This document shows positions 4,197 through 50,685 of a stretch of 64,000 nucleotides of DNA, in pieces. The position numbers were made by a program, and so were the translations under genes. Below the pieces are notes generated by a model. That model ran no database searches. It was not told the DNA's origin and was given only the letters and a program-made list of their open reading frames with translations. The DNA is from Anthoceros angustus. Its lineage: Eukaryota > Plantae > Anthocerotophyta. Numbering within the stretch: position 1 is the stretch's first letter; the number at the start of each line of letters is the position of its first letter. The stretch is from assembly GCA_010909165.1 (NCBI GenBank), contig MU008150.1, forward strand, positions 124,001 through 188,000, given 5' to 3'.

Positions 4197-5440
4197 CCTG
4201 ACAGCGCTCCACGGCACACCTGGACAAGCTCACAACTGCTAAGGATAGAACACGGTAAGAAGGACAACACCGGAACCAAGGGCACCTCAACTCACGCCCA
4301 CCATAGCAGCCCTCCCAACACATGCACACACCACGGCATGGAGTAACACACACGAATATGCCACAAACATCCATGAACAGACAGCCAAAAAGCAGACGGG
4401 CAACAGGCCGAGCTCCGCACCTTGCAGAACCCTGGCGGCGCAGTCAAAAAGCACCTGAAAGTAGAGGCGGTGGCGGGCGGAACTCGCGCACCTGCCACCA
4501 CGCCGGAATGCAACTCCTCCACTCCCCGAGAGCTGAGCAGCGGTCGCGAGAGCCTTCCTGACCTAAACCCAACGCGTGAGACACCAAGCGAGAACCGGGC
4601 AGGCAGGCAAAGCGAGCTTCAATCCAAGAGTTCCCAGAAGCCGCCTCCACCAGCCGTGGCGAAGTGAAGGCAGGCCTTCGCCTCGCCTCGCCTGGCTAAG
4701 CGGAGGCCCTGCCTGTCACGACGCCGGGGAGCAGCAACCACCTTCCTGGAGCGGGGGTACAGCAGGCAGTGACACCGTCAACGGCACAGCATGCAGGGGC
4801 GGCCGATCGAGAGCCTGGAAGGAGGGGACGAGGCAGGGAGGCGCCTGGGCATCGCCGTGAGCGAAGGCGGGAAGGCACATGCAGCCACCATGCAGGCAGG
4901 CGGCATGTAGCAAAGCCCCAGGACCGAGAAGAGGCAACACAACAGAGCACAAGCGAGGGAGAGGAGACAGTGCAGCCGGGCAGAAGCGGAGACAATGCGC
5001 CTGCGCCCGGGCCCAGTCAGCCACAACCCTAATGAGATTTTGGCTCTGATTCCCGATTTATGTACAGACCCACCCACAAACAGACAGCCAGAAATGGAGA
5101 CGGCCAAATCTCATACATGTGTAGTATCACCTACACATCATTTACCTCTAGAATACCGATCTCTGTTTTATAGTGAGACAGCTCGCCCTACCTACAAGTC
5201 CGCATCAATTACCACCATATATAGGATGTTTTTAAACCGGTCGAGAATTTGAACATTTTTTTAAGGGCTTCGAGAGAAGAAGAGAAGAATTATATTACAG
5301 CCACAAGAGTGTTACATTATGGTGATAGCATTCAATAGAGGGAACCATTGAAGTTATATAGCCAGCTATATGTCTAGGTTTCATCTTGAAGTCGCGTGTA
5401 CCTACTATGAAAAGAAAAGGCCTGCACTTTGTCGCTAACA

Positions 5441-5592: not shown

Positions 5593-7638
5593 GCCAACAC
5601 CTCCTACGATATCATAATGGAGACGATGGGAAACCCTTCATTCTGTTTGGCATTTAATGTTGGGCTGTTTGGTTTAAGCTGTCGATGAGGTTACTTGCAA
5701 CCGTTTGTTGTTGTTCTAGACATTACCTCTTTCTAAGTAGGGGTTCATAATAGTTTATATAGTAGAAAGATAATTGTTCTTGTTTTACTATTTTTTTCTA
5801 CTTAGAAAGAGGTTTTGATTTTCTAACTCGATTTTGAAGAATTGAGTTTGTTGTTTATGTCCAAGTATATGCTTGTATTTAGGAAGCTATTTCAAGAGTG
5901 CCCAAATGTTAACTCGGCACAAAGAAATTGAAAAAACAAAGTCTATATGAACCACATTTAATAAGAACCTACACGAATGTAGCAGGTTTAGTAGATACCT
6001 TCACGAATGAGAGGTGATTTAGCCCATCTCCAATTTCTGATTGTCTCTTAGAGCGATTCCAAATCAGAGAGAAAGCGAAAAATTTAAGGTTCCAGAATGA
6101 CTGGGCCCAACTCTAAGCGCACATAGAGACAAGTGGTAGTTTTTTTGTTGATCATTTTGTCTACCAATATACGGTAATGAACGACACATCATCTTGGTGC
6201 GGATGCCAATTTAGATGATCTTAACTGAGGTGGACTATTAGTTCATGTGGGCCAGGTGCCATCTCTAGCTAAAGCGCTCAGGGACAATCGCGAGTGGTTT
6301 GGATGTGTAGGGAGCAGGGAGGGAAGACAGAACACATGGGAAGGGTTCTAGAACATGGCAAACTTGACTTACTCTATCATTAACTTATCCACTATATGGA
6401 GAATTTTTTCTAGATGACTTGGAATTTTAACAACCAATGTGTATCACTTCAAAAACTTTTGAAAAGCTACTACCACATCCTTATCAGAGACACATATCAG
6501 ACATGGCACCGCTACTTGCATAAAGGCTCCGTCTTCATATCCGTTATGACTTGATGAAGAACATGAGACATATAATTGCGTGGGAAGAATTTCCATCATC
6601 AGAATCACTCCAATTAAAACCCTATAAAGTTGTCTGCATATCAATTTCATAAATATCCGTTGCTTGTAATCCACAGTTCAACTCAAGTATGAAAAGTGCA
6701 CCAAGATGTTGATAGTAAAATTGTCGAAAGTTCATGTAAGGACCATATTCCTGAGAGTTCCTCAGCTGCTCATCAAGAAAAGGTTCTCATAGCTTTACAA
6801 ATTTCTTGCATTTTAGGTTGAGAGCAAACTTCATAGTGCACAGGGTAGTTGATGCTAGTGAGTAGCAAGGGGATGAGTTTGGGTTTGCTCACAACTTGTT
6901 GAGGTATGTGTGAAGATACACAACTACGGACACAATAAAAATCCTGTCGAATGGACATAAAGAGAGTGCTCGACCCCCGATTCCGAGGAGGAGGAGGAAG
7001 AACAGCAAGAGCAGAAGCATGAACATGTCAGCGCAGGCTCTAGCTTGAATTAAAAAAAAATGAAGCTTTGCTCACTACCCACTTGGTCAAGCATTTTAAG
7101 TTTCTTTTCTTTCGATTTTCATTCAATAAAATTCATTATGACCTATTCTTCTTTGTACTATGATTTTTTTTGCTTCTCGCATCCTACTCCTTTTACAAAT
7201 GGCATCGGTACATAGCAGACAAGAAAGATAGAAATGGGCTAACGTGAGCGAACAAGGGGTTGTAACCCTAACCATTTTGAATTTTATGATTTTAAAATTA
7301 GTTATAAATAATATTATAAGAAAAATAAAGATGTGATATATCTTTCAAGAGAACTTTTTAAGTTGGATATATTTATTAACTGAATAAATAAAATTATTTA
7401 TTATTTTATAATAAAAATAAATCTCAAATATTAATTTAGATAGTTTAATTGATTATAATTCTTATATTTATTAAATAAATAAATAAATTTCTACCTCCAT
7501 TAAATAAGAGAAGGAGGGTTCATAATCTGATCTGCTATAAGAGTAAGATTATAAAACTTTTAATAATGATTTATATTATCAAACTTTTAATTCTAGTTAG
7601 CAGACGTAGGTAAATAATAGGTAACGAGGGGATAAGAT

Positions 7639-7665
7639 TATGGAATACCGATCTCGTCACACGGG
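7639..7665 (+). repeat. Left terminal inverted repeat (27 bp)
   Basis: Perfect reverse complement of 24902-24928. Confidence 0.95.
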
Positions 7666-8679
7666 CCCTTTAGGGTTTTTTTCCATTGTGACCAAAGAAG
7701 TTTTCCGGCATCTGGTGAAAACTCACAGTACGCAACCCGACATCGTGGTTCGCCTTAATGTCGTGTTTGTAAGGAATCTTTTACGGTTGTGTGACACACA
7801 ATGTTTTCGTTTTAAAATTTGTGAGGGCATGGGCCATCGGACATCCTTCGCATGACCCCATCCGTCGGTTTGCCGTCGATTTGCCATCGCCGTCACGAGG
7901 GCTTGATGGGAGATAGCGTGGAGGAGGGCACAAGGGCTGTATGCTGCGAGGCGGGCATCTGGCCACTGATAGCGTCTGGGCGCCATATGCGCCTCGCGCG
8001 GCTATCAGACCATCCGGCGTCGTCGCACTGAGGGCCAGCCATACGGGCCTCGCGGTGGCGCACACCATCTTCCGAGAACCGGCCTTTACATTGCACCACA
8101 ACAAAGCTTTGGGCTCAACTCTCAAAACGCGAACAAACAAATCCAAATTGTCACCGCTCTCATGGTGGCGCACAAAATGTCATCAGGGTCATGGTGGCGC
8201 ACAATCAATTTTCTCCGGCCACCTAGCTCACTCCGGAAGAAAAATCTGGGCCACGCCCCTCACACCTCGTGCACCATAGGCCAGGCGGGGTGATGGCCGT
8301 CACGCCCAGGGGTGGCTTGACCTCATCCAGTGGAGGTGGGTATTCGCAATCGTCCCACGTGCTCCTGCACTCCTGCAGTGTTGTTAGTGCCATGTGCTGG
8401 ATACATGTCAGGAGGAAGTCCTGCAATCCTTTGCATATGCATTGTCCTCGCCATCTGCGGTTCTGCACAACCCGCAATGATGGCCCATACGAGTTCCCGT
8501 GCACACACAAATGGCGATCGCCCTCCCTCCCTCCACAATCTTGTAACCTCTGAGACAAAATGAATGGCGAGACTGCGATTTGCTCACCGCTCGGCAATTC
8601 TATGCGGGTGGTGGCATCTCGGGGCCACGTTTTTGTGCATCTTGAGGCCACCCACATCGAACTCCTCGCCATCGTCCTC

Positions 8680-9850
8680 CTCAGCCCCATATGCGGGTGC
8701 CTGCACCCACCCTTGTAGTCGACCTTCTTCTTGGAATGCGATTGCAGGCACATGGCCGGAATGTCACATCGGCTGCCACGATCTTCCGCACCCGGTGCCT
8801 ATTCCATACCTGCCTCCAACGCTCGAGCTCTGCCCTCATCGTGGGCATGAAGGTCACGTGCAGGGAATGGATGTGCCAGGGGTTGGTGATGTCCAGTTCG
8901 CTGCTCCTCACCATATCCATCATGTACCCCTTGTAGAGGAATGCCCACTTCTCTCCCAAGGACCGCCAGAAATGCTCAATCCTCTGCAACAATCCGCATT
9001 CAACGCTTCCACCGGTGTCACTGCGGAAAGCAGAGACCTCCTAACTTTTACAGTTGTGCACGGAGGGGCGGATGAAGTTGCTTCCATGTGCCCTTGGCCT
9101 CGCTCGGTTCATATCCTCTATTAGGTTGTGCTGCTGCGTGGTCCGTGGCCAGCTGCGGATGCCCAAACTTCCTCCTTTGCTTCCACATAGGCGTTGAAAA
9201 TCGTCGTTCCCGCTTGTTATCCTCCGGCACCAACGGGGCGTAATGGGTTGCCCCATCTATGGCCCGTGCACTCAAGTAGAATTGGTACATCTTGTCATAA
9301 AAGGCTGCGGCAACCAGGCACCCGTCGGTGATTGCGGTCACAACTCTGCAATCACTTCTTCCTGCCGCGAACTGCGAACATCGCAGATGACCCCCCCCTC
9401 CTCTACAATCCATATGCCACATGTACATGGGTGTCGCATTGGTGTCTTGGGCCAGCAGCGGATGCGCCTTGTCGGCCGTCGTGCCATGTGCTCCGGGCAT
9501 CAAGCCGCCTCCGTCACCACCTCCTTGGGATTTCGATTCCATCCGATTGCACTCTGCCGCAGAATCGTATTCCGGCGTTCAGCCGTCTTTGATGGGTGTG
9601 TGCGTGGCAATCGTGCACACCTCCTCCACGGACAACCTCCCATACACCCGCGCCATGCCGTGTGCCGATCACGAGCCTCGTCACCGTGCTCAAGCTGCAG
9701 CCTAGCTCCGTCGGTAGGCCTTTCAATGGTCTCCACTGCAAGTGTTGCTGCCGCCAAATCATAGTTTGCGGTGTAAGTAGCGCGCGCACCGCCGCGTCTC
9801 CTGCATCCTTCATCTCCACCTTCCGGCCCTCATCCCCACGGCTCCTCACG
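8680..9850 (-). pseudogene. IS3EU-type DDE transposase (integrase core), frameshifted, probably with introns
   Basis: Motifs in order across shifting frames: NAGIRFCGRVQSDGIEIPRR; PMYMWHMD..FYDKMYQF..AIDG (first Asp); KFGHPQLATDH (second Asp); PSVHN|QRIEHFWRSL (Glu); ELDITNPWHIHSLHVTFMP..ELERWRQVWNRHRVR. These fit the WHxDGxDKL / SVHNQRIERLW / WNxHxIR consensus. The 5' boundary is uncertain (may extend to ~10330). Confidence 0.85.
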
Positions 9851-10569
9851 GTACCTCAAGTTTTCCGTCCGCATGATGATGGGCTTCGCCGCGACCTCGA
9901 TGCGGCCGTCTTTGGCGCGCCCACCATCTTCCTCGTCGTCGCGCTGGAAGGCCGCGCGCCCGCGTCCATGGGCACCCTTCACTGCCGTTTTGCCCCACGT
10001 GATGGCCAAGGTGGAACTTGGTGGCCTCAACACCCTCAGACCTCGCGCCCTACTCCGATGAGCGCTTTTCCTTGCCCATGCGCCTTCCTCCCGGTTCAAA
10101 CCCCAAATGCACCTCTCGCAGTAGGGCGATTTGATCCTCCTAACACTTTCCGCCCGAGTAATGGCATGTCAGCCAAGGGTTTCGACAGGACGGCTCGATC
10201 ATTGTTAGCGTATGCCCACTCCGATTTTTGTTCCAGCGGTCCGCGATTCAAGCGCTTGCGGGAGGGGTTTCCACCTGCATCTGCAGGTAGGCACTGCTGC
10301 AAGTTCTGGTGCGCCCCGCTAGTCACGGTTTAATTTTCGTTTCCGCATTTCATTCATTGTTTGAAGTGCGACCACAAGTGCACTCCACCAACACTTCCAA
10401 ACCGGTACGCACCAAACATTGTCCGTATGTGAACAATCTAGAATGGGCGCTTCACGTGCGAGCAACACACTTGCGTCCACCCATTTTACGGCGGGCCATC
10501 GACAATTACCGATGGCCTCTCTATCTTCACTCTTGTGCTTCCCATAAACCCGGCAAATAGCGAGAACCC

Positions 10570-13550
10570 TGTCTTACCTCAATGCGCAGGGTTCCACGAC
10601 GGTCCTCGGTGCGAACAAAAGGCATGGGATCTTCCGGCTATCGGGCGTATCCGTCGACCCCCATTGTGTGGCATGCCACGATAATCGGTCACATGCTTCC
10701 AGTTTGGAATACTCCCTCTTCGTTCGATTGAAGTCCATGTAACATATGAAATGCTCCGATCTGTACAATGAGTGGCGACCCACAAAAAGTTGTGTTGATC
10801 CAACTCCACAGGAGGATGCTCAATGTCCCAACTGCAAAGCGAGCCTCAGCATGTTCCAATGCCGCTTTGTGGCGTCCACAGCACATGTAACGCCGGTCCC
10901 ATTCCGCCCAACCGCCTCACTTCTTCCAACTCCACTTCTCCGATTGCGGAACATCCATCGCTATCATTCCCTCCACTGCGACCATAGGGTGCCATCCAAC
11001 TGCTTTCCTCCACTTTCGCAGCGGTGATTGCGAAAAGGCGTCCTTCTCATAAAACTCCCACGAAGCCTCCATTGACTTCTCACGAGCATGGTCACGGTGG
11101 CGTTCCTATCTCGATGGCCGAGCGCGATTGCAATCCACGGCTCTTGGTGCATCCTGGCAGCACCAACGTGCCATGCGATTCTTTGGCGCGTTCCGGCATT
11201 CCGTGCCCAGGCGTGCGCATGACGCCGAGGCACCTTGACTCCACCTCCAACCCCGGACCTCAATGGCATGGGCCTGCAATCGATCCTCTCCACGGTAGCG
11301 AAAATGAAATCTTTGTGCATTGCGGACAATGGAACCTCCAATACCATGAGTACCCATTTCCCGGACCGGCCGTGCCACATTTTCCTCCCTGCCATGTACG
11401 CTCGCACATGCGGAGTCGTGGAGTGGATTTGCGGGGACTCTCCCACTCCCACACCGGCTCCACCGTCGCCCGCGAGCCGTCGCTTCCACGGCCTCCTCCG
11501 CGCCCCGCCGTCGCGCATGTGCGGCGTCGTTCGCATTGGCGCCTTCCGGCGAGGCGTTCGGCGGGGGCAGTCGGCAGCGCGCTCGATGACCACCTCGCCA
11601 ATGCAACCTCGGTCGCCGCGCGCGGCGCGTCGGCGCAGCATCATCTTTGCCCGGCCGCCGCACCTCCTCCTCCGTCGCCATGGCTCCTTCCGGCGGGCGA
11701 CCATCCACCTCGCCGCCTCTGGATCGTCGCGTGGCAGCGCGTCCACGCCACGCTCTCGCAGCCGGTACTCGAATGGATCATACCCACGCACACAAGAGTT
11801 GTGAGGCTCAGGGCGAGCCAGCCAAAGCGCATTTTCACCTTTGAGGCCACATAGCCGCGTGCACATCGCTCGTTGTGGGCGGTGTCGCCTCCTTGAGCCG
11901 TACCCAAGCATGGCGTGGGCAATGGAGGCCGCTTTGTGCAATCCACCACCGCAATCAATAGCGAGGTTTGAGAATTCATGGCGACCCGGATGCGACGCCA
12001 GCGCTGCACCTCTGTCTCCACTTGGTGCACCTCCACGAGATCCACGCCCCTCCCAAGGTGGGTCGTGTTGATCACCGCCGCGGCGGTGACTTCCACCTTC
12101 CGTTCGGACGGCTCACGGGTTGTCCATGGCCTCTCCCCCCTCCTCCCTCCTCCGTCGCCATGGCTCCTTCACGGGCGCCGTGCGGCCGCACCTCCTCCTC
12201 CGCCGCCTCCCGTTTGAGCGCACCATCATGGCGGGCATTGAATGGGAATCATAGGTATACTTGCGGCCTCGGGATCGTCAGATCCCCAGCGGGCCGCCGC
12301 CTCCATTCGCCGATCCGCGCATAGCGCTGCAGCATATGCGACATGTTAGTCCACCGTCAAGTGCGTGTGCAATTGCGATGCCATGCGAGGCCACATCGAT
12401 CTCGGTTTCCACCGTGCATTTTCAGCAAACATTGAATGTGCAATCGGCGCGCACACCTTACAACGATCCGCTTGGCGGTTGCACCCTCTTGGTGGCCTGC
12501 GAACCCGCGGCCCTCGCCCTTACTTGCGTTGGCGTTCACCATCGGCTGTGCACCATCACGCCATTCCATTCGCAACCCATTACAATTTTGTGCCTTCACG
12601 GCGCGGTTACCTTCCACCGCCCACACTCGCATCCTGCCAAGTACTCGAACATGGTTCTCCGTCGGTTGATATCACGGAACAACGCTCCGTCTTCTCATTC
12701 CATTCCATTTCTCCATACGCCGCGAAATCAACCAATTCATAATACCTCATAATACCTCTCCACCGGTCGGTGGCACTTTCGATCGTGGGAAAACCAAATC
12801 CGGTCGTCAGCAGTTTACGGCTCTCCTTTCCGGTACCTCTTCCATCCCGCGGCGGCGCCGAACACTTGGTGCATGAAAATGTGGCACTCCACGGTCGGTA
12901 GCACTCTCGCGATAATTTGTCCACCGCCACTCCATCCGGTCATCCCTCGCGGTGCGGTCGTCAGACGGCAAGTTTCTGGATAGCCCTCTATGCGCGGACG
13001 GCTTTGATGGTCCTCCACAAATGCCAAGAACTCGGACAGCTCCAGTGGTTGATGGGAACCATAGGCCACGCGAGAATGTACTCGCGCGAGCTTTGCATCT
13101 CCCATTCCTCCCGGGCCCGCGCGCCCCGCGCTGCTGCCGGGACACGCAAACATGCGCATCCGCACCGTGATTTGCGGTCATCTGACATGGGCTCCGCTAC
13201 CTACTCTGCTGGCCACCTTCCACTCTTCAAGCGCAACGCCGCCAGAACACACCACCCACGGGCGCGCCTCGCTCGCCGCGCCCGGCGATCTTGTGTTCCT
13301 CATCCTCCTCCACGGCACGGGCGGGCGCGTTGCGCCTCCACCACCCACCCGGCGCGCCTTCCTTGCACGTAAATGTCGCACCCGTTTCCCTTCCGACCAC
13401 CGCGGCAACCGTCCCTTGTCCCTTCTCCGCAGGTTGCGGCGATCATGGCGGTGGACCGACGTCTGCTCAAACCCAACCGCACACGCGGTATCGCCCCCCA
13501 TTTCACTAACCCCTCCTTTGGTGGCGTGGGCGGAGTAGCTCGCTTATGCA
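10570..13550 (-). pseudogene. Degenerate cargo coding region inside the transposon; distal part weakly resembles a USP-type cysteine protease
   Basis: GC-rich coding-like sequence with a diverged internal duplication (KEPWRRRR at ~11680 and ~12160). Cys-rich segment CxxCTFNVCxxC near 12420-12450. Fragments WQGGKC, PALHVLW, PVELDQHNFLWVA, LYRSEHFICY and WKHVTD occur in USP-like order. Confidence 0.35.
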
Positions 13551-13689
13551 AACCCCTTTCACTTTGGGCCGCCACACAACCTCCCAATTTTCATTTCCAA
13601 CCAATCCATCTTCACAGCGTCCGGTGGTGTGGTTTGATATCTTTGCCGGACATACCACCGGAAAATTGAAAATCTATATACAAAAAACG

Positions 13690-14940
13690 AAAATCATAAC
13701 CCAAGGAAAAGGTGCACATGGCATGCACATGGTATGTATGCATGATGCATGGTTGCAATCGGATGCGTGAACATGTCTACCTAGATCTTTGTGTCATCTA
13801 TCGCATCGTCTATCTCCATCGCATGTCTATATGGCATACTATGACACATATATAGGTCATCGCATCTACATAGAAAAACCTAAACACCATAACCCAAGGA
13901 AAAGGTCCACATGACATGCACATGGTATGTATGCATGATGTATGGTTGCATTCGGATGCGTGAACATGTCTACCTAGATCTTTGTGTCATAGCGCAATCC
14001 ATCTATCATCGTCGTATGTATATGCACTATGGCATATAGTCATCGCATCTACATAGAAAAACCTAAACACCATAACCCAAGGAAAAGCGCATGTCGTTGT
14101 TCGGATGCATACATGTCATTTGTTCAAGGCCAAGGACAAGTATGATAATAAATAAACCCAAAGTTTCGACATTGTTGAGGTGGACGTGATTCAACATTCC
14201 TTGCGGCATACGCTACCGAAACATGTCTATATATGTGGCTTCCTTCCCAATCATGTAGAAGTTTGCATGGGCATCCATACTTGACCTGCAGAGGTTCGGT
14301 CAAGTAGACAAGGTCTTGTCTTCTTTCTCTCTTATGTCTTGTGGGATCCGCATTTTCCGGTGGGAGCCTCGGTCCAACCCTTAACGTCGTGTTTCCTTGG
14401 TCTTGACTTTAGCGAACATGTTGTCATACCACTTGCCATATGCCATGTGATTTGGGGGTGCATGTGATGAGGCATGCATTGAATGTATGGCATGCACATG
14501 GTGTGTATGCATGAAGTATGGTTGGCATGTTGTGTATGTGAACATGCCTAGGTAGATGTTGTGTCATGCCACAATGAATCCATGTGCATCGTGATGCATG
14601 TGGCCATAGCGGATATATAGGGTTGCGAACACATATATACGAATACATGAACAACATAACCCAATGAAAAGGCGAGTACGTTGTCTCATACATATCATTT
14701 GTTCAAGGCCAAGGACAAGTAGGTTTTAAATAGACCTATAGTGCCTACCGGGTGAGAGGTGGCGTGATTAACTCTGTTTCCTTGGTCTTGACAATACCGA
14801 TAAACATGTCTATATATGTGGCTTCCTACCCAATTCATTATTCGATTGTAGAAGTTTTATGCATGGAAAGGCATCCATACTTGCCATGCACTGGCTTCTT
14901 TCTCTCTTGACCTTTGGGATCTAGTGGGAGGCGTTAGGCA
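13690..14940 (+). repeat. Internal CATG-rich repeat array A (~185-195 bp units plus a larger ~585 bp duplication)
   Basis: cataacccaa(g/t)gaaaag at 13695, 13888, 14071 and ~14655; tcatttgttcaaggccaaggacaagta at ~14116 and ~14695. Confidence 0.9.
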
Positions 14941-15899
14941 ACCAACTTGATCGGGGCGCCTGTCAAATGCATTGCGATTGCCTTGGTCTTGGACAAGGGA
15001 CCATTGTTCATGTGTTCATATACGAATATGCACCTCCTTCATTATTGTCATTGTCATTCGAGGAGGGCTGCGGAGGCGAGCGCAACGTCATCCTCGTTTG
15101 AGCGCAAGTGCATTGTGTTCTATGGCGGTCGTTCATTGTCAATTGCACATTCAACCTCGTCGATTGCACATTCAACGCAATTGCCTTTTATGCTATGCAT
15201 TTGTAAGGCATTGTATGCATTCGAAATTCTGGCGGTTTAGGCATTTTGGGTTCGGTCGGCATTTTCACTTTGGTTTGTTGGGTGGGGTGGGTTGGTCTTT
15301 GGGTTGGCGGGTTGGGTTGGTGTGGGTTGGGGCGGGGTTGAGCCGGTGGGGCGGTTTGTGGTGGTGGGGCCGGGCCGTAGCGGGGTGGGGCATGCTGGTG
15401 CGGGCTCACCCAGCGGCAGCCTACAGTGCGGGAGGCTGCGGGATGGCGCGGGCGCTGCGGCGGGTCCGTGGAGCGGGCCGGGTAAGGGCGGGGAGGACCA
15501 GTGCTGCTCGGGATGGGGTCAGGATGTGGGAGTGACCAGGACAAATCTCCGAGCCATGAGGCGCAGGAAGGGCCAAGGCAACATGCCATCGAAAATGTGA
15601 AGTGATGATGGGCTGCGTTGGCGCCAATATGGGCCATGCTACAGTTTCATGGCAAGCAATATGGGATGGACTTCATGGGCATTGCGGACCATGGCCCGAA
15701 ATACCTTATAAATGCATAGCCGTGGACTGCGCATGCGCAATATAGACATCGGATGAGAAGGGCATTTGAATAAGCCGGGGCACAATGAATTGCTTCGAGC
15801 GTCGGTATTGGTGTGCGGTCCGACACAAATGCTCGCGGCCTTGATACCGCATCATTTGCCCTATCACACTATTCTGCGGACCATATCGGACCCAATATG

Positions 15900-18800
15900 T
15901 TAGTGCGACACGTTGTGCAGCATCTTCGCGCAGCGGAAGGAACCATGGACCCTCCGCCTCGACATGTTTGGCGGGCGCCCGGCGAAGTCAAGCCACTCGT
16001 CATGTCCTCTGCAACGGAGTAGTGCGGTGGCGGCAACGATGAGGGTGTGGCGTGGCCGCGGCGTGCATGGCACTATGGCGGCGCGTGGCTTGTGGAGAGT
16101 ATTGCGGCCAGCGTAGCGCGCAATCATGTTTGCGGGGCCAAAACTTATCGCGGCCGGCCCCTCGTAACTCAACGATGTACCGCACATGCCGGCGTGCGAA
16201 AGTATGTCGGGCGGGGATACGGAGGATTATGGACAATGATTTCAGCTTTCCGGCTGCAACCCCACCCTTGAACGCAATGCTTGCGGACATCGGTGGCCAT
16301 CGATCTCCTGCACATGCGCGTCTCGTCCCACACTGGCAGGCGCGCCACGCATCGGTGAGGCGTGTGGACATAAGGTCAGCTGCGGATCTTGCACAGGCTC
16401 CATGGCGTCTAGCGGAAGACACGTGAGCATTGCACACACCCGCTCGGGCGGACGAAGATGAAATTGGCACACGGTTCTTGATGAGCACGAAGGAGAAGCG
16501 ATCCGCGGATGGAGGCGGATGGAGCGGCCGTGTCTGCCCTCGGCGGATGGGCGGCCGTGCGCCGCCATCGCGCCGTTCGCGCCCCAGCCGTTCGTCAAGC
16601 GCGCGGCGGGCGACCTTGGCGTGGGCCGGCGTCACGCCCAAGATCGCGACCGGACGGCACTGCGCCGTCGAAGCCGCCATCGGGCGCTCGGAGGTTCAAC
16701 GTGGTGGTCGGCGGCCCTTCCACATATGGCGGGAATGGGTGGGAGGATCGTCTCGCATTCGCGCCACGCGCCACATTGGTGGGAGGAGGCGGCGGAGGAG
16801 AGCGGGCGCCTCCCTGCGGGCGCCGTTGGGACAATCCCATTCACGCTGCGGAATCACGGTGGTATAGGCGCGGAAGAAGCAAAAGAGCGGAGCGCCGTGC
16901 TTGCGAGGCGTTAACCAAAGCTCGGATACAAGTCTGGACAAGGCTTTCCCAAGGTCGACTTGGGAGATGGAGAAGGCGGCGAGTTGTCTTCGTGTCGCTC
17001 GACCTCACGCAGTGGAGCTCTCGGGCATGCGGTGGCGTCGTCTGGCAGCGCCGTTCGGAAGGAGCGTGTGTCGACCATTGTTGATGCGTGCGAGGCTCTA
17101 TTCGACAAGCTGGTGGCGATGCAGGACTTTGTGGTCCATCGCGATTCGTCGCGCACAAGTCCGGTGTATCCGGTGACATTCTGTCAATTTTTCCCAGCGT
17201 CACAGTCTTGGCAGGTGATCAGTATGCATGGGGCGTGGGGCGCAATTTACACCTCTGCTGCGGAGTGCGAGGGAGCGTGCGCCGGAGGTGTATGATTGGG
17301 TTGGGAGGAGGAAGAAGTGGATGTCCCGAGGATGGGAGGGATAGCGGGCGGTGGCGGCGGTGGTGGTGGGCGCTCGGAGGAAGAGTTCAACAACGCCGTC
17401 GGTATCCGGCATCCCACCTTGGAGGCACCGCACATCCCACTGCCGGTCGGGACATGTGGGGAGGCGCACAATTTCCTCTCCCTCAAGGCCAGGCCAGCCT
17501 TGAGTAGAGCTGCTGCGTGGGCGGGCGCCACGTCCGGCCGGGCGGGCGTGCCCGTTGATGGGCGTCTCGCGGCGGGAGGCGGGAGGAGGCTCTCAGCGGC
17601 ATGGCAACGGACCTTCTTAGTTGTGGAAGAGCTCGGCACACACCACCGCAGTGGGAAGGCGAAGGCAGCGTCGGCGGGGCGACCGGAGCCATCGCGAGCT
17701 TCTTTTCTTCATTTTGGGTCACTTGCGAGGCGGAATGGCGGGGCGAAAGCAGATCACGGCTGCGCTTGCAAGGCTGCAACATCTTGGACAGGCGCGAGCG
17801 AACTCGCGGAAGGGCTACTTTGCATCCGGATGGTCAAGGCATGGGCCAGCTGGAAATGTTCGACACGCCACCATCCGAGGGTTCTTCGCCGGCGTCTCCA
17901 GTGCGGGCTGGTGCGCCTTCTCGAGGACATGGACGACTAGACCTTCGCTCCATGACGGCGGAAGAGTTGCGAACAGCGGCACCAACTTGAGGTTCGCGAT
18001 GGATGAGGGCGAGATGCTCACGCCGCGCCCACCGCGGTGGGTCGCTTCGAGCGAGCGGCGAGGAAGGCGGAGAAGAAGCGGCGGCGGCGCATTCCGGCAG
18101 GAAGCGCCGCGATGCCGCCCACTGCGATCGGGTTTGCGATGACCAGAAGGCTCTGTATGCCGTCCGAGCGGAGCGAGGCGGCGATTCGAGGACATCCTAA
18201 CCCTCCGGTGAGTGCGAAGATGCCATTATTGCGGTGCGCCGATGGGGTTGACGCCGGCCTTTGGTGATTGCGGGTTGAGGCGGGCATGGAGTGCCAACTG
18301 CTTCGACAATTTCCGGGCGGGAGGGACCTTTCCACCGTTTAGAGTGCGATCACAGTGCAGGGCAGTGGTGATAGTCCACGAGGTTGGAGCGATGGGCCAG
18401 CGGGCCTCGAGGCGGTGCATCGGTGAGGCTGGAAGCAGTGCGAGTCGCCGTCATTTGTGGGCGTGTTGAGCTAGCGTTCGGCGGTGCTACACATTACCAC
18501 ATCGACAGTGCATCCGACCCCTCTGAGTGACATGGTAAGATATATGGCATGATTGATGCAAAATGTGCGGTCGGCAGATGCCTCCTTGTGCGAGCCATGT
18601 TCTTGAGCTCTACATCACTGGCAAATGGCATTGAGGTGAGTCGTCCCATGACATTTGCCACACTCGCACGCACTAGGGAGCCAAAAGGACGGCGTGCACA
18701 AGTGGAAGGATGCGGGCGCGAGAGGGCGTTGAAGAGGGCTTTTAAAAGGCGGATATGTTGACAAGCCACCTCATGGCCATCCTCCAAGAACGAAGCGCGG

Positions 18801-19400
18801 GGCTCGGCGGGCGAAGAGGAAGCGGCTGCGATTTCATCGGCCGGGTCCGATGGCGAGCAGGCTCCCGGATTTTTCAAGCATGTGGCGACGAAGCCCTCGC
18901 ATGTCTGGGGCGGCGGTGGCGCGCGTCGGAAGAAGGTGCGGGACCCGGCTTTTATTCACCGGTGCACACGCGTTGGCGGGTGGGTGGGAGAGGGTTCGGC
19001 ATGTGGTGCACCTGGACAAGAGGGCCATGTTGGAGTGTCTAGGGAGTGCACGTTTGAGAGTGTCACCAAGTTCTTCGCCACGCATGGATGCAGGCGAGCG
19101 TTCTGGCGGAGTGAGATTCGAGGCTTGCCGCGGTTGAGAGAAATGTTACGTGAAATCGTCGAGAGATGTCATTCGGCGATAGGCGCTGTTCACCTTCATC
19201 ACCGGAGTTTACTTACTTCGGGCGGTGCCAATGGTGGTCGAGCAAGTTCCCCTCCGGGCATTTGGGCGTGCCTCGATCGAGGCGTGCTCGCACTCTCACT
19301 CCGCTCTATGTCTCAAGCTCGTGATGGCCGCGGGTGACGAAGCCATCCGCATGAACTCCGTGTATGGGCAGCGGCCTCGGTCGGACCTGCGTTTCATTAG
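15900..19400 (+). pseudogene. Degenerate cargo gene ending in a HECT-type E3 ubiquitin ligase-like domain
   Basis: LREMLREIVE..ALFTFITG (19183-19206)..SIEAC(19285)S..TL..LYVSS..DEAIRMNSVYG matches the HECT C-lobe pattern W/F-E-I-L..LLxFxTG..PxAHTCxxxLxLPxY..LxxAI..GFG. Upstream AHALAGGW..LDKRAMLECLG and HEVGAMGQ fit N-lobe positions loosely. GTAAG/GTGAG intron donors at ~18535 and ~18636. N-terminal extent uncertain. Confidence 0.6.
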
Positions 19401-20859
19401 AGGCGGCAAGTGGTTTTCGAAGTTGTGTTTGTCCTGGCCCCCGCGAGGGCACTAATGTGAAGAGACTTTGACTGTCCGCACTCACGCTTGGTTTGCGATG
19501 GCGGATCTGGCGAAGCGGTGCACCCACAGCAGAGCGGCCGATTCGGCGTGGTGCTTTCCGTCACCAATTGAGAATGGGCGAAACAAGGTCGGGCGCAATA
19601 ATACGGAAAGTAGGGTTGGCGGTGGCATTTGGGCGGTCGAATGGAGCGGAAGTGCATCCGCGGAGGTTCAATCGGCCGCGGCTGCCCCAACCACATTGGG
19701 GAAATGGAAAGAGGTGCGAGCGGTGAGGTTTGGGCGGAAGGTCTTCCATGTGGGCGTGCACGATGCGCATGGCTGCGGTGGTGCGGCCGAGCAAGGTTGT
19801 TGTCATTGCGACAATCCGAGGTGGACAGCTCAAAGTTCTTGCGACATCGGATCAGAGGCTGGAGACGTGGAAGAAGACAAGCTGGAAGTGTGCGGCGTGG
19901 AAGTGCGGTCGGTGCGGTTCGTCAGGTGCTCCTCGATGATGAGGGCGAGGTTTGGGCCTTGCATTCCACGGTGGTCTTGGGCATGGCGAGGAGTTTGGGC
20001 TGCGTGTGGAAGGCGGGGATGCGGTAGCGATCTGCTGCGGAGGAAGGCGCTTTGGTGCATCATCGGTATGTGAGCCCACTCGCGCGCACCATCCGTCGTT
20101 GTGCGTAGCGCGGTGCCTTATGCGGTGGGAGGAAGGTCCTTGAATCAGGGGCGGGCGGGCGGGCGGAATGGCCTCAAAGGAGGTGCATTTGATTGCGGCG
20201 CGCAATCACCGGAGGAGCGGTGAACTTGCAGTGGCGATGGCGGCAGTGCTGCTCATAATAGCATGATCGCGAGTGGAAGAGTGGTTGTGGAATGGCGGTA
20301 GCGGGGCACTTTTATACTCCTCCATAAGTTTGGTGTTTCGCAAGGGCATCATGATGATTTATAATCGGTCCAAAGCCTAATGAATGAATTTGTTTTAGTG
20401 GTCAGTCCAAAACTTTCGGTGTTTTCGTTTTCATGTCAGTATGTCATGGGCTAGTCCTCGACCTTGGCCCAATGGCGAAAACAACATCGATTGTTTCGTC
20501 ATTCGACATGGCCCAAAGCGAAAACAACTCGATTGTTTTCAATCAGTGAATAAATTTCCCCTTTGGACCATCGGCCAGTCATGAAAGGGAAAATACTCAT
20601 TGGCCTTTGGAGCTTTCACATTGGCAATGAAGAACAAAACTCCTTGGCCTTTGCACCAATATGTCAATCAATGAATGGAAGGAAGACCTTGGCCTTTGGA
20701 CCAAACCGAGAATCACCAAATGAAGCGAAGTACCTATGACCATTACCGCTGTGAGCATTCGCATAGGTGCGCCATTGACACCGACTGACCTCCCACTAGA
20801 CAATGCGGTTCCCAAAGGTGAGAAGAGGGAAAGAGAAAAGAAGGGACGAAGTATGGCTG

Positions 20860-21960
20860 CCTATCCTTTATGACAAACATGTACAATCGAAGAATCATAG
20901 GTTGGGTAGCCCACATATATAAACCAACGGGACTCTCGATGAAGCACCACCGCCGATGGTAGGACTACGGATCTATTTAGAGTCCTACTTCTCCTTGGCC
21001 TTTGAACAAATGATATTTATGCGATTAACAACCTACTAGCCCTTTTCCTTGGTTTATGATTTTCAGGTATTTTCTATATAGGTGCGGTGACCTATATATG
21101 TGTAGTAATCTTGTGCCTTACAAACATCGCGATGCACATAGGTTGATTGTGCCATGACACACATCTAGGTAGACATGTTCACAATACGTGGTCCAAAGGC
21201 CAAGGCCAAGGACGTTTCTTCCTATATATAGGCGGTAGGCGGGGATAGGCAAGTAGCGTGTAGTTGGTAGTCCATGGTTGGGTAGCCCACATATATAGGC
21301 AAGGCTGATGGAGTGCCACCATCGATGGTAGGCGATTAGGTATATTTGTAATCCCACTTGTCCTTGGCCTTGAACAATTGATATTCATGCAAGAAACGTA
21401 CTCGCCCTTTTCCTTGGGTTATGGTGTTTACGTGGTTTGAATATAGATCGGACCTATATATGTGTCATAGTACCACCGCGAACATGCATCACGATGCACA
21501 TAGATGGAAAAGGTGCCCATGAGAGCATCTAGGTATACATGTTCACATACTTCAACCATCCATCCCACATGCATGCATACCATGTGCTTTCCATGTGCAC
21601 ATTTTCCTTGGGTTTTGATTTTTAGGTCTTTCTATATAGATTGGCGTATGTGTGTAGCCAGTCGTGAACATATATCACGATGCACATGCACATGGTATGT
21701 ATGCATGATGCAGTTGACGGTGATGCATGTGACCATGTCTACGTAGATCGTGTCGTGGGCACCTTTTCCTTGGGTTTTGATTTTATGTCTTCTATATCGG
21801 CACGTGACCTTTATATGTGGCATGGTACCCTTCGACATGCATGACGGTGCACATACATGGATTGTGCCATGGCACGACATCTAGGTACAAATGTTCGGAT
21901 GCATCACATGACAACCGCCATCATGCATACATACCATGTGGATGCCATCCATAGGCAATG
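20860..21960 (-). repeat. Internal repeat array B, inverted relative to array A
   Basis: ttttccttgg(g/t)tt at ~21043, 21408, 21602 and 21764; cttgtccttggccttgaacaa at 21357; catctaggtagacatgttcac at 21162. All are reverse complements of array A motifs. Confidence 0.88.
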
Positions 21961-24901
21961 CACATGTGACATTGGTCCAAATCGAAGGACTTTTCTTCCT
22001 ATTTATAGGCAAGGCGGAAAAGGCAAGTATAGATGCCATGGATAGATGGCGGGAACACATCGGAAAAGGGGAAGTGGTAGGTTGACTAGCGGTCCGTTGT
22101 CCGGACTCAAGCAAGCATGCAGTTAGAAGGTTGGAGCTACGCAAGCTGAAGCGGCGGTGGCAACATCACGGACCATCTGGCAGTGGTGTTGGAAAGCGAA
22201 TAAATGCGGCGGCACTTGAGCGGCCAAAAGCAGTGCGCTGGTGGCAAGTGATGCATTGGGGTGCCAAATGCGGTGAAATCTGAACAGGCGGCTTTCTTGA
22301 TTTGGGCGCAAGTTGGGGCAGCTCTTCACTCGGCAACTCCAAGTGCCACTTTTCAAAGTGGAAGCTCACGAGCATAGGCGTTTTGGGATATGGGCGGCGA
22401 GGTGGAAGACATGGAGCTCGACACACCCATGCCGGGGCAGGAGAGGAGGCGCCTTGGAAGGCATGGCGGTGGGGCATGGGCGCCGGCCGCGGGCGGCGGC
22501 GATGAGAAATGGCGTCGTGGCGGCGGCAATCGCTTCTGCTCGGCGGCAGCGGCGAGCAGCGGCGGTGGCGTCGAGGCGCCGCGGCGCGAGCTTGAAGCAG
22601 GCCCCGGCGACGAGCGAGCATGCGGCGGAGGCTCGGTCGGCGGCTGTGGCGGCGGGGCATCCGATCTGCGCTTGGTGGAAACCCTCCAGCGGCAGGCGTG
22701 CCACCTTGGGCGATCCCAACAAGCGGCGTGGAGTCTTTTGTTTGCGCCCACAAAGCCGTCGCGGATGGGGCTGCGGCCAAACACGGAGGCGGTGAGGCGA
22801 TTGCATGCGGCCGAAGTCTGGGCTGACATGAGGCAGTTGAAGCGACACCAGAAAGCGGTCTGGCAGCTGGGTTACTGCATGCGCCGGCTGATGGAGGATA
22901 ATTTGGCGGTGCGGCCGCCGCTATAGGGAAGGGGTGCTGCGTGTAATGCGGGTGGCTTTGCGCATGCGGCCAATGGGTGCGATCGAGGATGCGGCACGAT
23001 CGCAGCTGCGATGCGACCTTGTACTGACGGACATTATACGGCCTGGCAGCTGGCGAAACAAGGCGCAACCCATGTGGTTGCGCCAAGCGGGCTGCAAACA
23101 GGCGCATGCGGGGACGGAGGACCGGGCATCCCTTGCGCCTCCTTCTCGGGCGTGCCGTGGGGGCGGGCGGAGGAGGTGGGGGCGAAGTGAGGATGGTGGG
23201 GCAAGCGGCTCCGGGGGAAGGAGCCGTCGGGCGCTTGGTGAGTGGAGGAGAAGGAAACCGAGGAGGAGGCGCGGACTGACGAAGGAGGCGTGGGGTTGCG
23301 AGCGAAGGCGAGGCGGCGGCGGACAACAATCGGAAGACTCATGGTAAGTGAAGGCACAATCCGCCGTGGTGTTTGACAATGCTGGTGGGTTCGATTGTCA
23401 TTGCCTCGTAATCTTTGGTTGCAAGTGGTGAACTTTGCCATGCACGGTACTCATATGTCTGCAGTTGGGTTTGCGGTGTGGGCCAGTGGGCAGACCGAGC
23501 CCTGGTCATCTCGGCCAGCAGAACGTTCGCATCCGGTACTCTGACGTGGGCGTCGTCGGAAGATCGAGCGGAGGCTGGCGGGCTGAGGCGGAGGGCGGCA
23601 AAGGCGAGAGGCTGCTCATCGTTGAGCTCGAGGCGGCGGCGTCACCGGAAGAGGAAGAGGTGCGGCCGAGCAGGCGGACCTAGCGGTGGGCGCCGTGGGG
23701 GCGCCAAGATGCAAGGCGGAGTGCGGGCGAACCCGGTGCTTGCCGAGGCGTGAATGGGGCCAGCCGGTGGGAGGGGCCCGCCCGCAACAAGGTGGGGCAT
23801 CCGGCTCAATGGAGCTCCGAGTATGGTAACAGCAGCGAAGTCAATGCGATTGCAATCCGCCGCCATGACGCGCCTCCTTCTTGAAGTGGTGGAGAAGGTG
23901 CGCAACGGTCCACTTGCACACATGGAGGAGTGATGGGCGGGACTCCGGCCCGGGCCGACAACGCGGCCCGATGGGAAATGCCGCTGCGCTGGTTCATGAA
24001 ATGGACGTGGCGCATCCTCCATGCCATCGGGCCAATGTGCAAGTCGCGGTTGTGGTGGTGGACCTCCCTCTCGACAGCGCCACCCGCCTTCCGGTTTCGG
24101 GGTCCCCCCCATTGGTGCGGGGATGAACCACCTCCCCAACCTCACCGAGACGGTGGTGCACTGGCCGCCATGCTGTCGGGTGCACCTCCCATGTCCGGAG
24201 GGACATTCGGCCCCTCCACGGCCCAGGCGGCCACTGACGAATGCGGAGGAGGAGCCAAGTTCGGAGCACAAGAGGATGGAGGACTGCTCACGAGGCTTCT
24301 TCGCGGCCTGGCGTAGGAGGTGTTTTTGTTGTAGCGCTCCACCATGAGGTGTGGCGCTTGACTCGGATGTTTTTGGTTGAAGCAGCAGGCGATTCGCAGT
24401 GTCTCGTAGGGGCGGAAGTGGATTTGTAGGACGATGACATTGCCCTGTTTGATGAGGTTGAGGAGGGATAGTGTGAAGCATGTTCGGATCTCATGCCTGC
24501 ATTGCAATGGTTTCCTTCACGCGTGTTCGGTTTGAAAGGTGAAGTTCATCATCTTACAGCTGTCCATACATCCGCAAGCACAACACAAGCATGTTAGCCG
24601 CCTCCCACATCCTTCCCGCATATATAGTGAAAGCGCTGTGTAAGCGGAGGATTTGCGCTGACGCCACAACAAAAGTTCCCATGTGTGTATGTTTGTGTGT
24701 TGAAAAAAACCCTAACAATCAAAAAAAACATGTATGACACCATGAACGGAGGAACGTGTGATAGAATGTTTTTTCCCCGCGTACGAACCCCGTGAAGCTG
24801 ATGTGGCACGTATTATACGTGTATTATACGTGAGTATCGAAAAGATTCCGTGGCATATCCTCGTAGCGTACACCGAAAAGAAAGAAAGTCACACACACAC
24901 T

Positions 24902-24928
24902 CCCGTGTGACGAGATCGGTATTCCATA
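24902..24928 (-). repeat. Right terminal inverted repeat (27 bp), followed by TSD TAAGAT
   Basis: cccgtgtgacgagatcggtattccata|taagat. Confidence 0.95.
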
Positions 24929-25119
24929 TAAGATAAGAGCGAGGATGAAGACCTAATAATCTTTGATATGCTCTGTTGGTATAATATTGTTCGTACCTAT
25001 GTGTGTAGATATTTGTTGGATAAGCACTCCATTCCCTGTTGCAACTTGCAGAGAGGAAGGTTCGGAAACGGGTCGTGGCATCGGTGAAGGCGCCCCAGTT
25101 TGAGGTGCAAGCGCGTGGG

Positions 25120-25899
25120 ATGAGGCATCGACTCCTGAGATCTGATGTGAGCGGAGATGCAGGCGGATGGAGTGACGGTGGCGTCGCCTCGCTCTCGCCG
25201 GTGGCAACCGCTGCTGGAGATGGTGGTGGCGCCAAGGCGAAGAAAGGCAAAGGCAAGGGGAAGAACGAGGGCCAAGGAGCACCTAAATCTAGACCCAGGC
25301 CTCGAAAACCTAAAGCTGCAGAAAGCGTCGGAAATGAGGCTACCGAGGAGGATGCTGCTGCGGAAGATGGCTCTGCACACGTCGGTGCCAGGAAGGAGGG
25401 TGGTGGCAAGGCCAGGTCCCAGGCCAAGCCTCGCAAGCGCAAGCTGGCCCCGGCGGAGGCTGTGGCAGTGGATGCTGATGCTGAGGATCTTAAACTGCAT
25501 CCGAAGCAGGCGGCTCGCATGAAGAAATCGGGCGCGCCAGGCAGAGCCAGGAGCAAGGTCAAGAAGGTGGACGCGCCCGCCAGGGAGCGGGAGCGGGGGC
25601 GGCAGCGGGGGTCCGACACCGACTCTGACCTGGAGTTGCGCTCGGACGCGGAGACGGAGACCGACGCCGAGGTGCTGAGCAGGGACGGGGTCAAGTGCCG
25701 CAAGCTGGAGAGGGACTTGCGGCTGCTGGAGGAGCAGAGCGTGGACATCTCCCGGGAGTTGGAGGAGACGGAGGATCTGGTGAAGGAGTTGCAGAAGGAG
25801 AAGGTTGCGCTCCTGGATGAGCTCCTCATTCTGGAAGGCCTGGCGGTCAATCCCTACCCTCCCTTCAGGCCAAAAGAAAGTGCGCAGAAGCGCAGGTGA
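25120..25899 (+). CDS. Lys-rich nuclear-type protein with a conserved plant C-terminal coiled coil (possibly INO80E-like)
   Basis: Open frame. C-terminus KCRKLERDLRLLEEQSVDISRELEETEDLVKELQKEKVALLDELLILEGL resembles a conserved plant coiled-coil motif. Splice acceptor ttgcag at 25046-25051 lies upstream of the ATG. Confidence 0.7.
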   Translation: MRHRLLRSDVSGDAGGWSDGGVASLSPVATAAGDGGGAKAKKGKGKGKNEGQGAPKSRPRPRKPKAAESVGNEATEEDAAAEDGSAHVGARKEGGGKARSQAKPRKRKLAPAEAVAVDADAEDLKLHPKQAARMKKSGAPGRARSKVKKVDAPARERERGRQRGSDTDSDLELRSDAETETDAEVLSRDGVKCRKLERDLRLLEEQSVDISRELEETEDLVKELQKEKVALLDELLILEGLAVNPYPPFRPKESAQKRR

Positions 25900-27017
25900 C
25901 TTTCCGTCGCCAATCAGCGCTGTGAACGCTCGCTCCTTTGGTCTGGCTTCAACTTCAAAGCCTCAGTTGCGGGTGAGTATAGCTGGCAGAATTGTAAGCG
26001 CAAGATATCCTTGTTGTCTGCAGCATCTGGGCAACTTACTCTTCGACTCTGCCTGCTCTCTCACAGACAACGCCGTGGCGCCTCCAGATTGTAGTCTCAG
26101 CCTTCTGCCGCTCCTGTGTGTGAGAGACCATGCCCTGTTTTTGAAAGGTGAGCATCAAGGTGTCTTGCATACGCCCATGGTCTCTCTTTCTTGGTGGATT
26201 GAACTTGCATCCGTTGCTAACTAACTAACTGGGGCATTTTTTTTCAGGTACATATTTGTGGCGTTTAGGGAGGAAATTTGGGAAAGGGCTTCGTATCTTT
26301 TTCAGTCCGTGCAAGGAAGTTACATACGTGTAATGGAAGCATGTGATTTGAGTCTGGGTGGAAACGTCTCATCAGAGGCAAAACTGTTTGGGCACATTGA
26401 TGCCAGGCGAATGTATAAATATCTACAAACAATGTTGTGATGCTTGCCTAGCAGAGGACAAACCGTTTGGGCACGTTGATGCCATGCCAATCTATACAAA
26501 TGTTGTGATGCCTACTCTATCTTACACAAGCCAGGATTCGGAATATGTCCAGGACCAAGTATGTACGCACAGTCAGTCCTGTTGCAATGGAAAGCAGAGC
26601 TATGCATACTTGGAGGCGGCGGCTCGGGCACCACCTAACACCGCCGAGGAACGTGTGATAGAATGTTTTTCCCCCAGAAACCTGCGTGAAGCTGATGTGG
26701 CACGTATTATACGTGTATTATACGTGAGTATCGAAAAGATTCCGTGGCATATCCTCGTAGCGTACACCGAAAAGAAAGAAAGTCACACACAGACTCCCGT
26801 GTGACGAGATCGGTATTCCATATAAGATAAGAGCGAGGATGAAGACCTAATAATCTTTGATATGCTCTGTTGGTATAATATTGTTCGTACCTATGTGTGT
26901 AGATATTTGTTGGATAAGCACTCCATTCCCCTGTTGCAACTTGCAGAGAGGAAGGTTCGGAAACGGGTCGTGGCATCGGTGAAGGCGCCCCCGGAGTTTG
27001 AGGTGCAAGCGCGTGGG

Positions 27018-27792
27018 ATGAGGCATCGACTCCTGAGATCTGATGTGAGCGGAGATGCAGGCGGATGGAGTGACGGTGGCGTCGCCCTCGCTCTCGCCGG
27101 TGGCAACCGCTGCTGGAGATGGTGGTGGCGCCAAGGCGAAGAAAGGCAAAGGCAAGGGGAAGAACGAGGGCCAAGGAGCACCTAAATCTAGACCCAGGCC
27201 TCGAAAACCTAAAGCTGCAGAAAGCGTCGGAAATGAGGCTACCGAGGAGGATGCTGCTGCGGAAGATGGCTCTGCACACGTCGGTGCCAGGAAGGAGGGT
27301 GGTGGCAAGGCCAGGTCCCAGGCCAAGCCTCGCAAGCGCAAGCTGGCCCCGGCGGAGGCTGTGGCAGTGGATGCTGATGCTGAGGATCTTAAACTGCATC
27401 CGAAGCAGGCGGCTCGCATGAAGAAATCGGGCGCGCCAGGCAGAGCCAGGAGCAAGGTCAAGAAGGTGGACGCGCCCGCCAGGGAGCGGGAGCGGGGCGG
27501 CAGCGGGGTCCGACACCGACTCTGACCTGAGTTGCGCTCGGACGCGGAGACGGAGACCGACGCCGAGGTGCTGAGCAGGGACGGGTCAAGTGCCGCAAGC
27601 TGGAGAGGGACTTGCGGCTGCTGGAGGAGCAGAGCGTGGACATCTCCCGGGAGTTGGAGGAGACGGAGGATCTGGTGAAGGAGTTGCAGAAGGAGAAGGT
27701 TGCGCTCCTGGATGAGCTCCTCATTCTGGAAGGCCTGGCGGTCAATCCTACCCTCCCTTCAGGCCAAAGAAAGTGCGCAGAAGCGCAGGTGA
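27018..27792 (+). pseudogene. Second, frameshifted copy of the coiled-coil gene
   Basis: Same sequence as 25120-25899 with several single-base indels. Confidence 0.6.
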
Positions 27793-28493
27793 CTTTCCGT
27801 CGCCAATCAGCGCTGTGAACGCTCGCTCCTTTGGTCTGGCTTCAACTTCAAAGCCTCAGTTGCGGGTGAGTATAGCTGGCAGAATTGTAAGCGCAAGATA
27901 TCCTTGTTGTCTGCAGCATCTGGGCAACTTACTCTTCGACTCTGCCTGCTCTCTCACAGATAACGCCGTGGCGCCTCCAGATTGTAGTCTCAGCCTTCTG
28001 CCGCTCCTGTGTGTGAGAGACCATGCCCTGTTTTTGAAAGGTGAGCATCAAGGTGTCTTGCATACGCCCATGGTCTCTCTTTCTTGGTGGATTGAACTTG
28101 CATCCGTTGCTAACTAACTAACTGGGGCATTTTTTTTTCAGGTACATATTTGTGGCGTTTAGGGAGGAAATTTGGGAAAGGGCTTCGTATCTTTTTCAGT
28201 CCGTGCAAGGAAGTTACATACGTGTAATGGAAGCATGTGATTTGAGTCTGGGTGGAAACGTCTCATCAGAGGCAAAACTGTTTGGGCACATTGATGCCAG
28301 GCGAATGTATAAATATCTACAAACAATGTTGTGATGCTTGCCTAGCAGAGGACAAACCGTTTGGGCACGTTGATGCCATGCCAATCTATACAAATGTTGT
28401 GATGCCTACTCTATCTTACACAAGCCAGGATTCGGAATATGTCCAGGACCAAGTATGTACGCACAGTCAGTCCTGTTGCAATGGAAAGCAGAG

Positions 28494-33942: not shown

Positions 33943-34257
33943 ATGGGAAAGCACGAGCAGGCCACCGGCTGGCCGCTGGAGTCGGAGCTGGGCCTGGAGT
34001 TGGACGCCTCCTCCCCAAGGTGCACCCCGTCCCCTGCATCGCACCTGCCTCCCCAGCACGCGGCGAGAAGTAGAGACCAGGTAGCCAGCTGCGGCAACAT
34101 GCAGATGGCCGGTGCGCCGCCGGCCCGACACCGACCCGCCCTCCAGCCGGCCTCAGCCGTCGCCAACGCGCCTTCTCCTGCCACTGGCATGTCCAAGTTC
34201 TCGCTGCTGGGGCAGCAGCTGCATTACTCTGCGCCGCCCCAGCAGCAGGACCCCGCC

Positions 34258-34309
<52 letters not shown>

Positions 34310-50520: not shown

Positions 50521-50685
50521 AGAGACCACTGGAAAGTGGGACTAATGTTTATTTTTTCTCGGAGGATGAATGTATGGAATACCAAAGCACACAGAGGGGA
50601 CAGGGCACGTTTTGAGGGGACGGGGTACATGTTTTCGCAACTTTCTCGTACAATATGCCTAATACTAGGTCTCTATAAGAACATA

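Follow-up and report, generated by a model that had tools for sequence, protein, structure and literature searches.

A window of 64,000 nucleotides from the hornwort Anthoceros angustus (contig MU008150.1, positions 124,001 to 188,000 of the forward strand) was analysed, and all coordinates without a locus name refer to it. At 7639–24928, the window carries a 17.3 kb element bounded by perfect terminal inverted repeats (TIRs) of 27 bp, one on the left at 7639–7665 (plus strand, starting TATGG) and the other on the right at 24902–24928 (minus strand), the last 27 bases being the exact reverse complement of the first 27. Similarity between both sides ended immediately interior to these 27 bp, and the termini had the form TATGG..CCATA, that is, TA..TA ends. 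The target-site duplication (TSD) TAAGAT, of 6 bp, abutted both ends, at 7633–7638 and at 24929–24934. An inverted repeat like this pair would be expected by chance about 3e-7 times in 64 kb, and the 6-bp duplication about 3e-4 times. No other TIR pair with a TSD was detected in the window, and the 27-bp TIR did not occur in the viral contigs or fetched loci examined. A preliminary description, made from the sequence alone, had named the same perfect TIRs, TAT..ATA termini and perfect TSD, which were exactly reproduced, and had placed an integrase-core transposase on the minus strand near the left end, which was borne out by the family and profile matches given below. A recent insertion is a reasonable reading of the perfect TSD, from which no date can be derived. 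The insertion lies about 115 bp ahead of a putative host exon starting near 25053, and may fall within an intron or the 5' region of this exon (25039–25899).

Analysis of the left end revealed a transposase gene of three exons on the minus strand with a helix-turn-helix (HTH)-like N-terminus. The single-frame piece 8684–9040 matched the Pfam family rva_4 with an E-value of 1.4e-11, and a local profile alignment tolerant of frameshifts and introns, with a profile built from the longer of the relatives described below, scored 122 bits, the null maximum being 22. Scored separately, exons 1, 2 and 3 gave 36, 46 and 125 bits, with null maxima of 20–22. Exon 1 (9407–9830) holds the HTH-like N-terminus and the first catalytic aspartate (9410–9408); its start codon is not fixed, it includes about six inferred frameshifts, and its score (null maximum 20) covers 9726–9408. 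It is followed by intron 1 (9305–9406, GT..AG, 102 bp), located immediately after the motif WHMD, and by exon 2 (9053–9304), with the second catalytic aspartate (9143–9141), about five inferred frameshifts and a null maximum of 20. Intron 2 (8984–9051, GT..AG, 68 bp), whose donor is preceded by a codon short by 2 nt, leads to exon 3 (8584–8983), which contains the catalytic glutamate (8977–8975), one frameshift near 8761 and an inferred 3' end. Thus, all three catalytic residues are present, about 57 and about 35 profile positions apart, and the motifs WHMD..YDKM and SVHN|RIE are each interrupted by an intron. No HHCC zinc finger was found before the core: the N-terminus aligned with the corresponding HTH-like part of rva_4 proteins, and no integrase zinc-finger match was obtained in Pfam.

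A protein search over 1.84 billion sequences returned 103 relatives with E-values of 0.001 or below, and those checked by Pfam or by name were rva_4 proteins from plants, animals, fungi and algae. The top relative, P0001, encoded at locus L001 of Joint Genome Institute (JGI) contigs, matched at 41% over 70 aa, and the cluster of another close relative, P0003, includes proteins from the moss Ceratodon purpureus. The window, L001 and the Ceratodon locus L006 share the codon positions of both introns, with the donor position and phase of intron 1 conserved and the acceptor context of intron 2 identical among the three. In a tree of 51 rows and 70 columns, the window exon fell inside a starred nine-row clade with moss-type sequences (support 95/86). 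Forcing the window row and five pre-named moss-type rows into a clade by themselves was rejected by the approximately unbiased test (p-AU 0.001), since three unlabelled rows are nested within this set; the nine-row clade itself is supported. By-eye reading also found the window transposase colinear with the core of Sl-GR-005 as printed in PMC6839031. Word-index searches for homologues were nearly blank and give no information on longer kin, and scans of metagenome and viral contigs for related loci found nothing. As a separate observation, a 21-bp palindrome was present in at least 15 dispersed copies at the Ceratodon locus (L006:50–7720), upstream of its GingerRoot transposase and around several long unannotated open reading frames (ORFs).

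Judged from its sequence, the element is a member of the IS3EU/GingerRoot group of DNA transposons, on account of its TA..TA ends, 6-bp TSD, rva_4 transposase of the DDE type, shared introns and grouping with moss sequences. The assignment to IS3EU made in the preliminary description was therefore right, as the ends, the TSD and the transposase were all found. In contrast, its premise that records of IS3EU come chiefly from animals and fungi was wrong, since GingerRoot elements were reported from Selaginella and mosses in 2019 (PMC6839031) and belong to the same lineage (PMC10045372). The group, published for non-seed plants in 2019, is therefore not new to plants, and multi-gene IS3EU elements are also known (PMC12730594, PMC10853768). 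GingerRoot elements of Selaginella lepidophylla have a 6-bp TSD, TA..TA ends, TIRs of 100–150 bp and sizes of 3.9–12.9 kb, with relatives present in mosses and animals (Cerbin et al. 2019, PMC6839031). IS3EU and GingerRoot have been united in a single lineage at a bootstrap of 99%, and IS3EU is defined by TA..TA termini, a usually 6-bp TSD, the lack of the HHCC motif and a DDE core (Kojima and Bao 2023, PMC10045372).

The element shares every item of this published definition, and with the GingerRoots of PMC6839031 it has in common the 6-bp TSD, the TA..TA ends, an integrase-related DDE transposase, a size of several kb and a non-seed land plant as host. It differs from them in its length of 17.3 kb, in its shorter TIRs of 27 bp and in its AT-rich target, where a GC-rich preference was described; furthermore, neither a HECT gene nor internal inverted arrays, both considered below, were reported for those elements, and hornworts were not mentioned. 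Its termini also agree with the TAYGG..CCRTA ends and 6-bp TSD of the fungal IS3EU families of rusts (PMC12730594). The multi-gene elements of fungi, including the families with TET/JBP and alpha-kinase genes (PMC12730594) and Styx (PMC10853768), carry several genes in both orientations, as this element appears to do; however, no TET/JBP, alpha-kinase, GATA or CCHC signature was found here, and Styx is 7.9 kb long. Two other classes were considered and rejected. A Polinton/Maverick is contradicted by TA..TA rather than AG..CT ends and by the lack of matches to DNA polymerase B, packaging ATPase or capsid in Pfam and PHROG, and a Gypsy/Ty3 long terminal repeat retrotransposon or a Ginger1/2 element by the lack of terminal direct repeats and of a reverse transcriptase match and by TA..TA rather than TG..CA ends.

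Beyond the transposase, the interior showed one further recognisable candidate, a HECT E3 ubiquitin-ligase domain broken across frames at about 18370–19400 on the plus strand, divergent from the transposase. The motif LxxFxTG of the HECT C-lobe occurred once in the whole window on both strands (128 kb), as LFTFITG at 19186, and was followed at the expected spacings by P, C (a candidate catalytic cysteine near 19285) and LxP. This full ordered chain was likewise found only once in the window, recovered a scallop control and appeared in 0 of 1500 resamples, although it was defined post hoc, after the region had been seen. By eye, the spacing of the candidate tail was as in moss-type HECTs, with 18 residues from PxY to YG and VMA at an equal offset. 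In addition, HECT genes were found beside related transposases (L001:2226–7000, L011:8505–8738 and L016:10001–23914). In L001, a moss-like JGI contig, the HECT gene is found 4 kb upstream of, and in the same orientation as, the best-match transposase, and in the scallop Mizuhopecten yessoensis (L016) it lies tail-to-tail with an rva_4 transposase. The window element thus resembles the moss-like element of L001/L011 and the scallop locus in having an rva_4 transposase next to a HECT, but differs in the divergent arrangement of the two genes, and the HECTs are too distant from each other to align significantly. The ordered C-lobe motifs, unique in the window, and the HECT genes beside related transposases make it likely that a HECT ligase gene is present at 18370–19400. 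Our literature search, which did not extend to Repbase itself, found no description of IS3EU elements with HECT or ubiquitin genes, or of HECT-encoding DNA transposons.

The remaining interior is mainly composed of GC-rich tracts. GC skew was negative over 8–14 kb and positive over 14–24 kb, as expected for genes directed away from the array at 13670–14920 (array A) described below. The tract at 10400–13500 was depleted of stops on the minus strand (z −4.1 and −3.0) and may hold one or more accessory genes, and that at 16450–18300 was depleted on the plus strand (z −2.8) and is possibly a low-complexity N-terminal part of the HECT gene; neither matched any family. Since the non-coding arrays were depleted of stops to a similar degree, this is weak evidence for genes. 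An intact ATG-to-stop ORF of 178 aa was found just downstream of the second array at 22390–22926 (plus strand), with no Pfam match and a low-confidence model (predicted local distance difference test, pLDDT, 46), and another GC-rich tract, provisionally assigned to the plus strand, extends over 22930–24500. Searches with 99 pieces on the expected coding strands against NCBIfam and PHROG gave no match, those of interior ORF pieces against PDB and the ESM Atlas were negative, and signature motifs of DNA methyltransferase, Ulp1, OTU, SET, alpha-kinase, PHD, RING and CCHC were either absent or no more frequent than expected by chance. Consequently, the claim of at least four more coding-like units was not confirmed, and the multi-gene cargo first proposed is reduced to one extra gene, the probable HECT recognised at motif level. 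Two by-eye ideas were discarded, a Ulp1-like protease at 10500–10850, unsupported by motif and family searches, and an RNase-H1-type hybrid-binding or AP2-like fold at 17170–17290, unsupported with a best Z of 4.5. The 111-aa frame around the latter (16960–17292, plus strand) gave a low-confidence fold of three strands and a helix, AP2/WGR-like (pLDDT about 70 over 40 residues; Z 4.5, not significant). A short direct repeat (about 75 bp, 71%) was also observed between 11649–11740 and 12146–12221 in the minus-strand GC-rich tract.

Inverted arrays had been noted inside the element in the preliminary description, and two, of 1.25 kb each, are present. Array A (13670–14920, plus strand) is composed of diverged modules of about 190–250 bp in the order A A B A B and is AT-richer, non-coding and provided with several TATA-like words, whereas array B (20790–22030, minus strand) is its inverted homologue. 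The arrays, both AT-richer and built from two module types, were 67–77% identical between the blocks and up to 85% within them, and they are much older than the insertion. No notable folding was detected in them (z −1.7), and no mirror symmetry at protein level was found between the two arms. Their position between GC-rich tracts and the TATA-like words are the sole grounds for the suggestion that they probably act as promoter or protein-binding modules. As the arrays mirror each other around 14920–20790 like long subterminal repeats, and as GingerRoots are able to capture fragments of host genes (PMC6839031), the size of the element could also be explained by a short GingerRoot of about 3 kb, encoding just the transposase and enlarged by an unrelated nested element between the arrays or by captured host DNA. 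We regard this as decidedly unlikely, because neither the outer nor the inner ends of the arrays showed a TIR or TSD, the arrays are just 67–77% alike, HECT recurs as a neighbour of related transposases, and the interior did not match the host genes of the window. Unrelated nested insertions had been named from the start as an outcome that would refute the proposal, and no inner element with its own TSD was found.

Altogether, we consider it highly probable that the locus is occupied by one DNA transposon of the cut-and-paste type, belonging to the GingerRoot (plant) branch of IS3EU, with an interior of its own that includes a probable HECT companion gene. Several results weigh against this interpretation. 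The lineage placement is weakened by the tree of 70 columns, a short alignment that lacks an outgroup from any other superfamily. Of 173 single-frame pieces (at least 55–75 aa), none gave a significant Pfam match outside the transposase, and PF00632 did not match the single-frame pieces of the candidate HECT region, for which PDB searches of pieces were also negative and local frameshift-aware profiles stayed below background. Finally, no TIRs were found around the HECT–transposase pairs of L011 and L016, where the ligase is only adjacent. These negative profile searches would equally suit an interior that, beyond the transposase, is non-coding GC-rich filler with HECT-like motifs arising by chance, as would the post hoc definition of the chain and the presence of its first motif by itself in about 11% of resamples. 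The host-trained codon model sees no coding signal in the interior either, yet it misses the transposase too and is uninformative on the window. However, the full ordered chain, with its uniqueness in 128 kb, its absence from the resamples and its recovery of the scallop control, and the tail spacing equal to that of moss-type HECTs make such an origin unlikely.

The condition of the proposed transposon is a separate question. About 12 small frameshifts and zero stops were inferred across the 843 coding nt of the transposase with an aligner that avoids stops and may over-call shifts in divergent exons, and the breaks in exons 2 and 3 were mostly deletions of one or two bases, several of them inside base runs. 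The right end of the element provided a measure of the errors in the assembly. There, the segment 24749–26632 is followed by a second copy in tandem at 26646–28526 (plus strand, about 1.89 kb), containing the right TIR and TSD (repeated at 26796–26828), the host exon and, in all, 1.7 kb of flanking sequence; the preliminary description had missed this repeat. Between the copies there are 13 indels, mostly 1-bp homopolymer changes, and four substitutions; the prevalence of homopolymer indels indicates that the second copy is probably an assembly artefact, and reveals the error type of the assembly. The host genes at 28497–29704 (minus strand), 33850–35893 (plus) and 45272–46454 (plus) appear broken across frames, which also points to indel errors.

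Many of the transposase frameshifts are probably long-read assembly errors, and such error is a fair explanation in view of the frame-split host genes of the same window; real decay is about as likely, because the density of frameshifts exceeds that of the duplicated segment. A real but dead element, the transposase and ligase of which would have decayed long before a transposase from elsewhere recently moved this copy, is to be taken seriously, at odds only slightly short of even. It would account for a frameshift density several times the approximately 0.35% per copy of the duplicated segment and for the damaged codon at the donor of intron 2, and defective copies of Styx are mobilised in trans (PMC10853768). 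On the other hand, there is no stop in the inferred frame, with the above reserve on the aligner, the three catalytic residues are retained, the breaks of exons 2 and 3 are mainly short deletions, often in base runs, and the single-copy host genes of the window are likewise frameshifted. At the opposite extreme, it is possible, although rather doubtful, that this copy is intact, autonomous and recently active, representing a large GingerRoot subgroup in which two duplicated, inverted promoter modules drive its own HECT and two to four genes from unknown families, and that HECT is an ancient IS3EU/GingerRoot companion common to plants and animals.

Around the element, the host exon at 25039–25899 encodes an acidic/basic low-complexity stretch followed by a coiled coil, with no Pfam match. 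The gene at 28497–29704, split near 28950 and also lacking a Pfam match, is one that we take, by reading alone, to be maltose-exporter-like. That at 33850–35893, apparently frame-split, is a STOP-type zinc finger gene, and that at 45272–46454, split near 45650, an E-class pentatricopeptide repeat gene (PLS/E-type). These last two kinds of gene mark the host as a land plant. A poly(A) polymerase was found at 2355–4217 (minus strand) as a single unbroken ORF of 621 aa, its coding part without introns. The region 46900–64000 was rich in repeats and probably consists of other, decayed transposons; it holds several internal duplications, a tract rich in CAG/CTG near 52900 and, at 58649–59230, a weak match to DUF7869 (E-value 8e-4). 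No tRNA or Rfam family was detected in the window.

By analogy with the integrase/IS3 family, the spliced DDE transposase would bind and pair the 27-bp TIRs, and the element would be cut out and joined to its target with a 6-bp stagger, the repair of which would give rise to the TAAGAT duplication. Its own interior would comprise the HECT companion directed away from the transposase, the GC-rich tracts and the two old inverted non-coding arrays. The ligase would most likely serve the element by ubiquitinating the transposase, so as to tune its level, or a host silencing factor, which would be removed.

The basic find is an ordinary one, and the HECT pairing is its one point of interest. With 17.3 kb, the element shows that IS3EU/GingerRoot transposons of plants can be larger than those published, and its presence in a hornwort widens their host range. 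The main interest lies in the HECT–transposase neighbourhood that recurs in the plant of the window, in a moss-like contig and in the scallop. If the ligase truly belongs to the element, the transposon would encode a ubiquitin ligase of its own, which might counter host silencing and would have a parallel in the TET/JBP genes carried by IS3EU elements of fungi.

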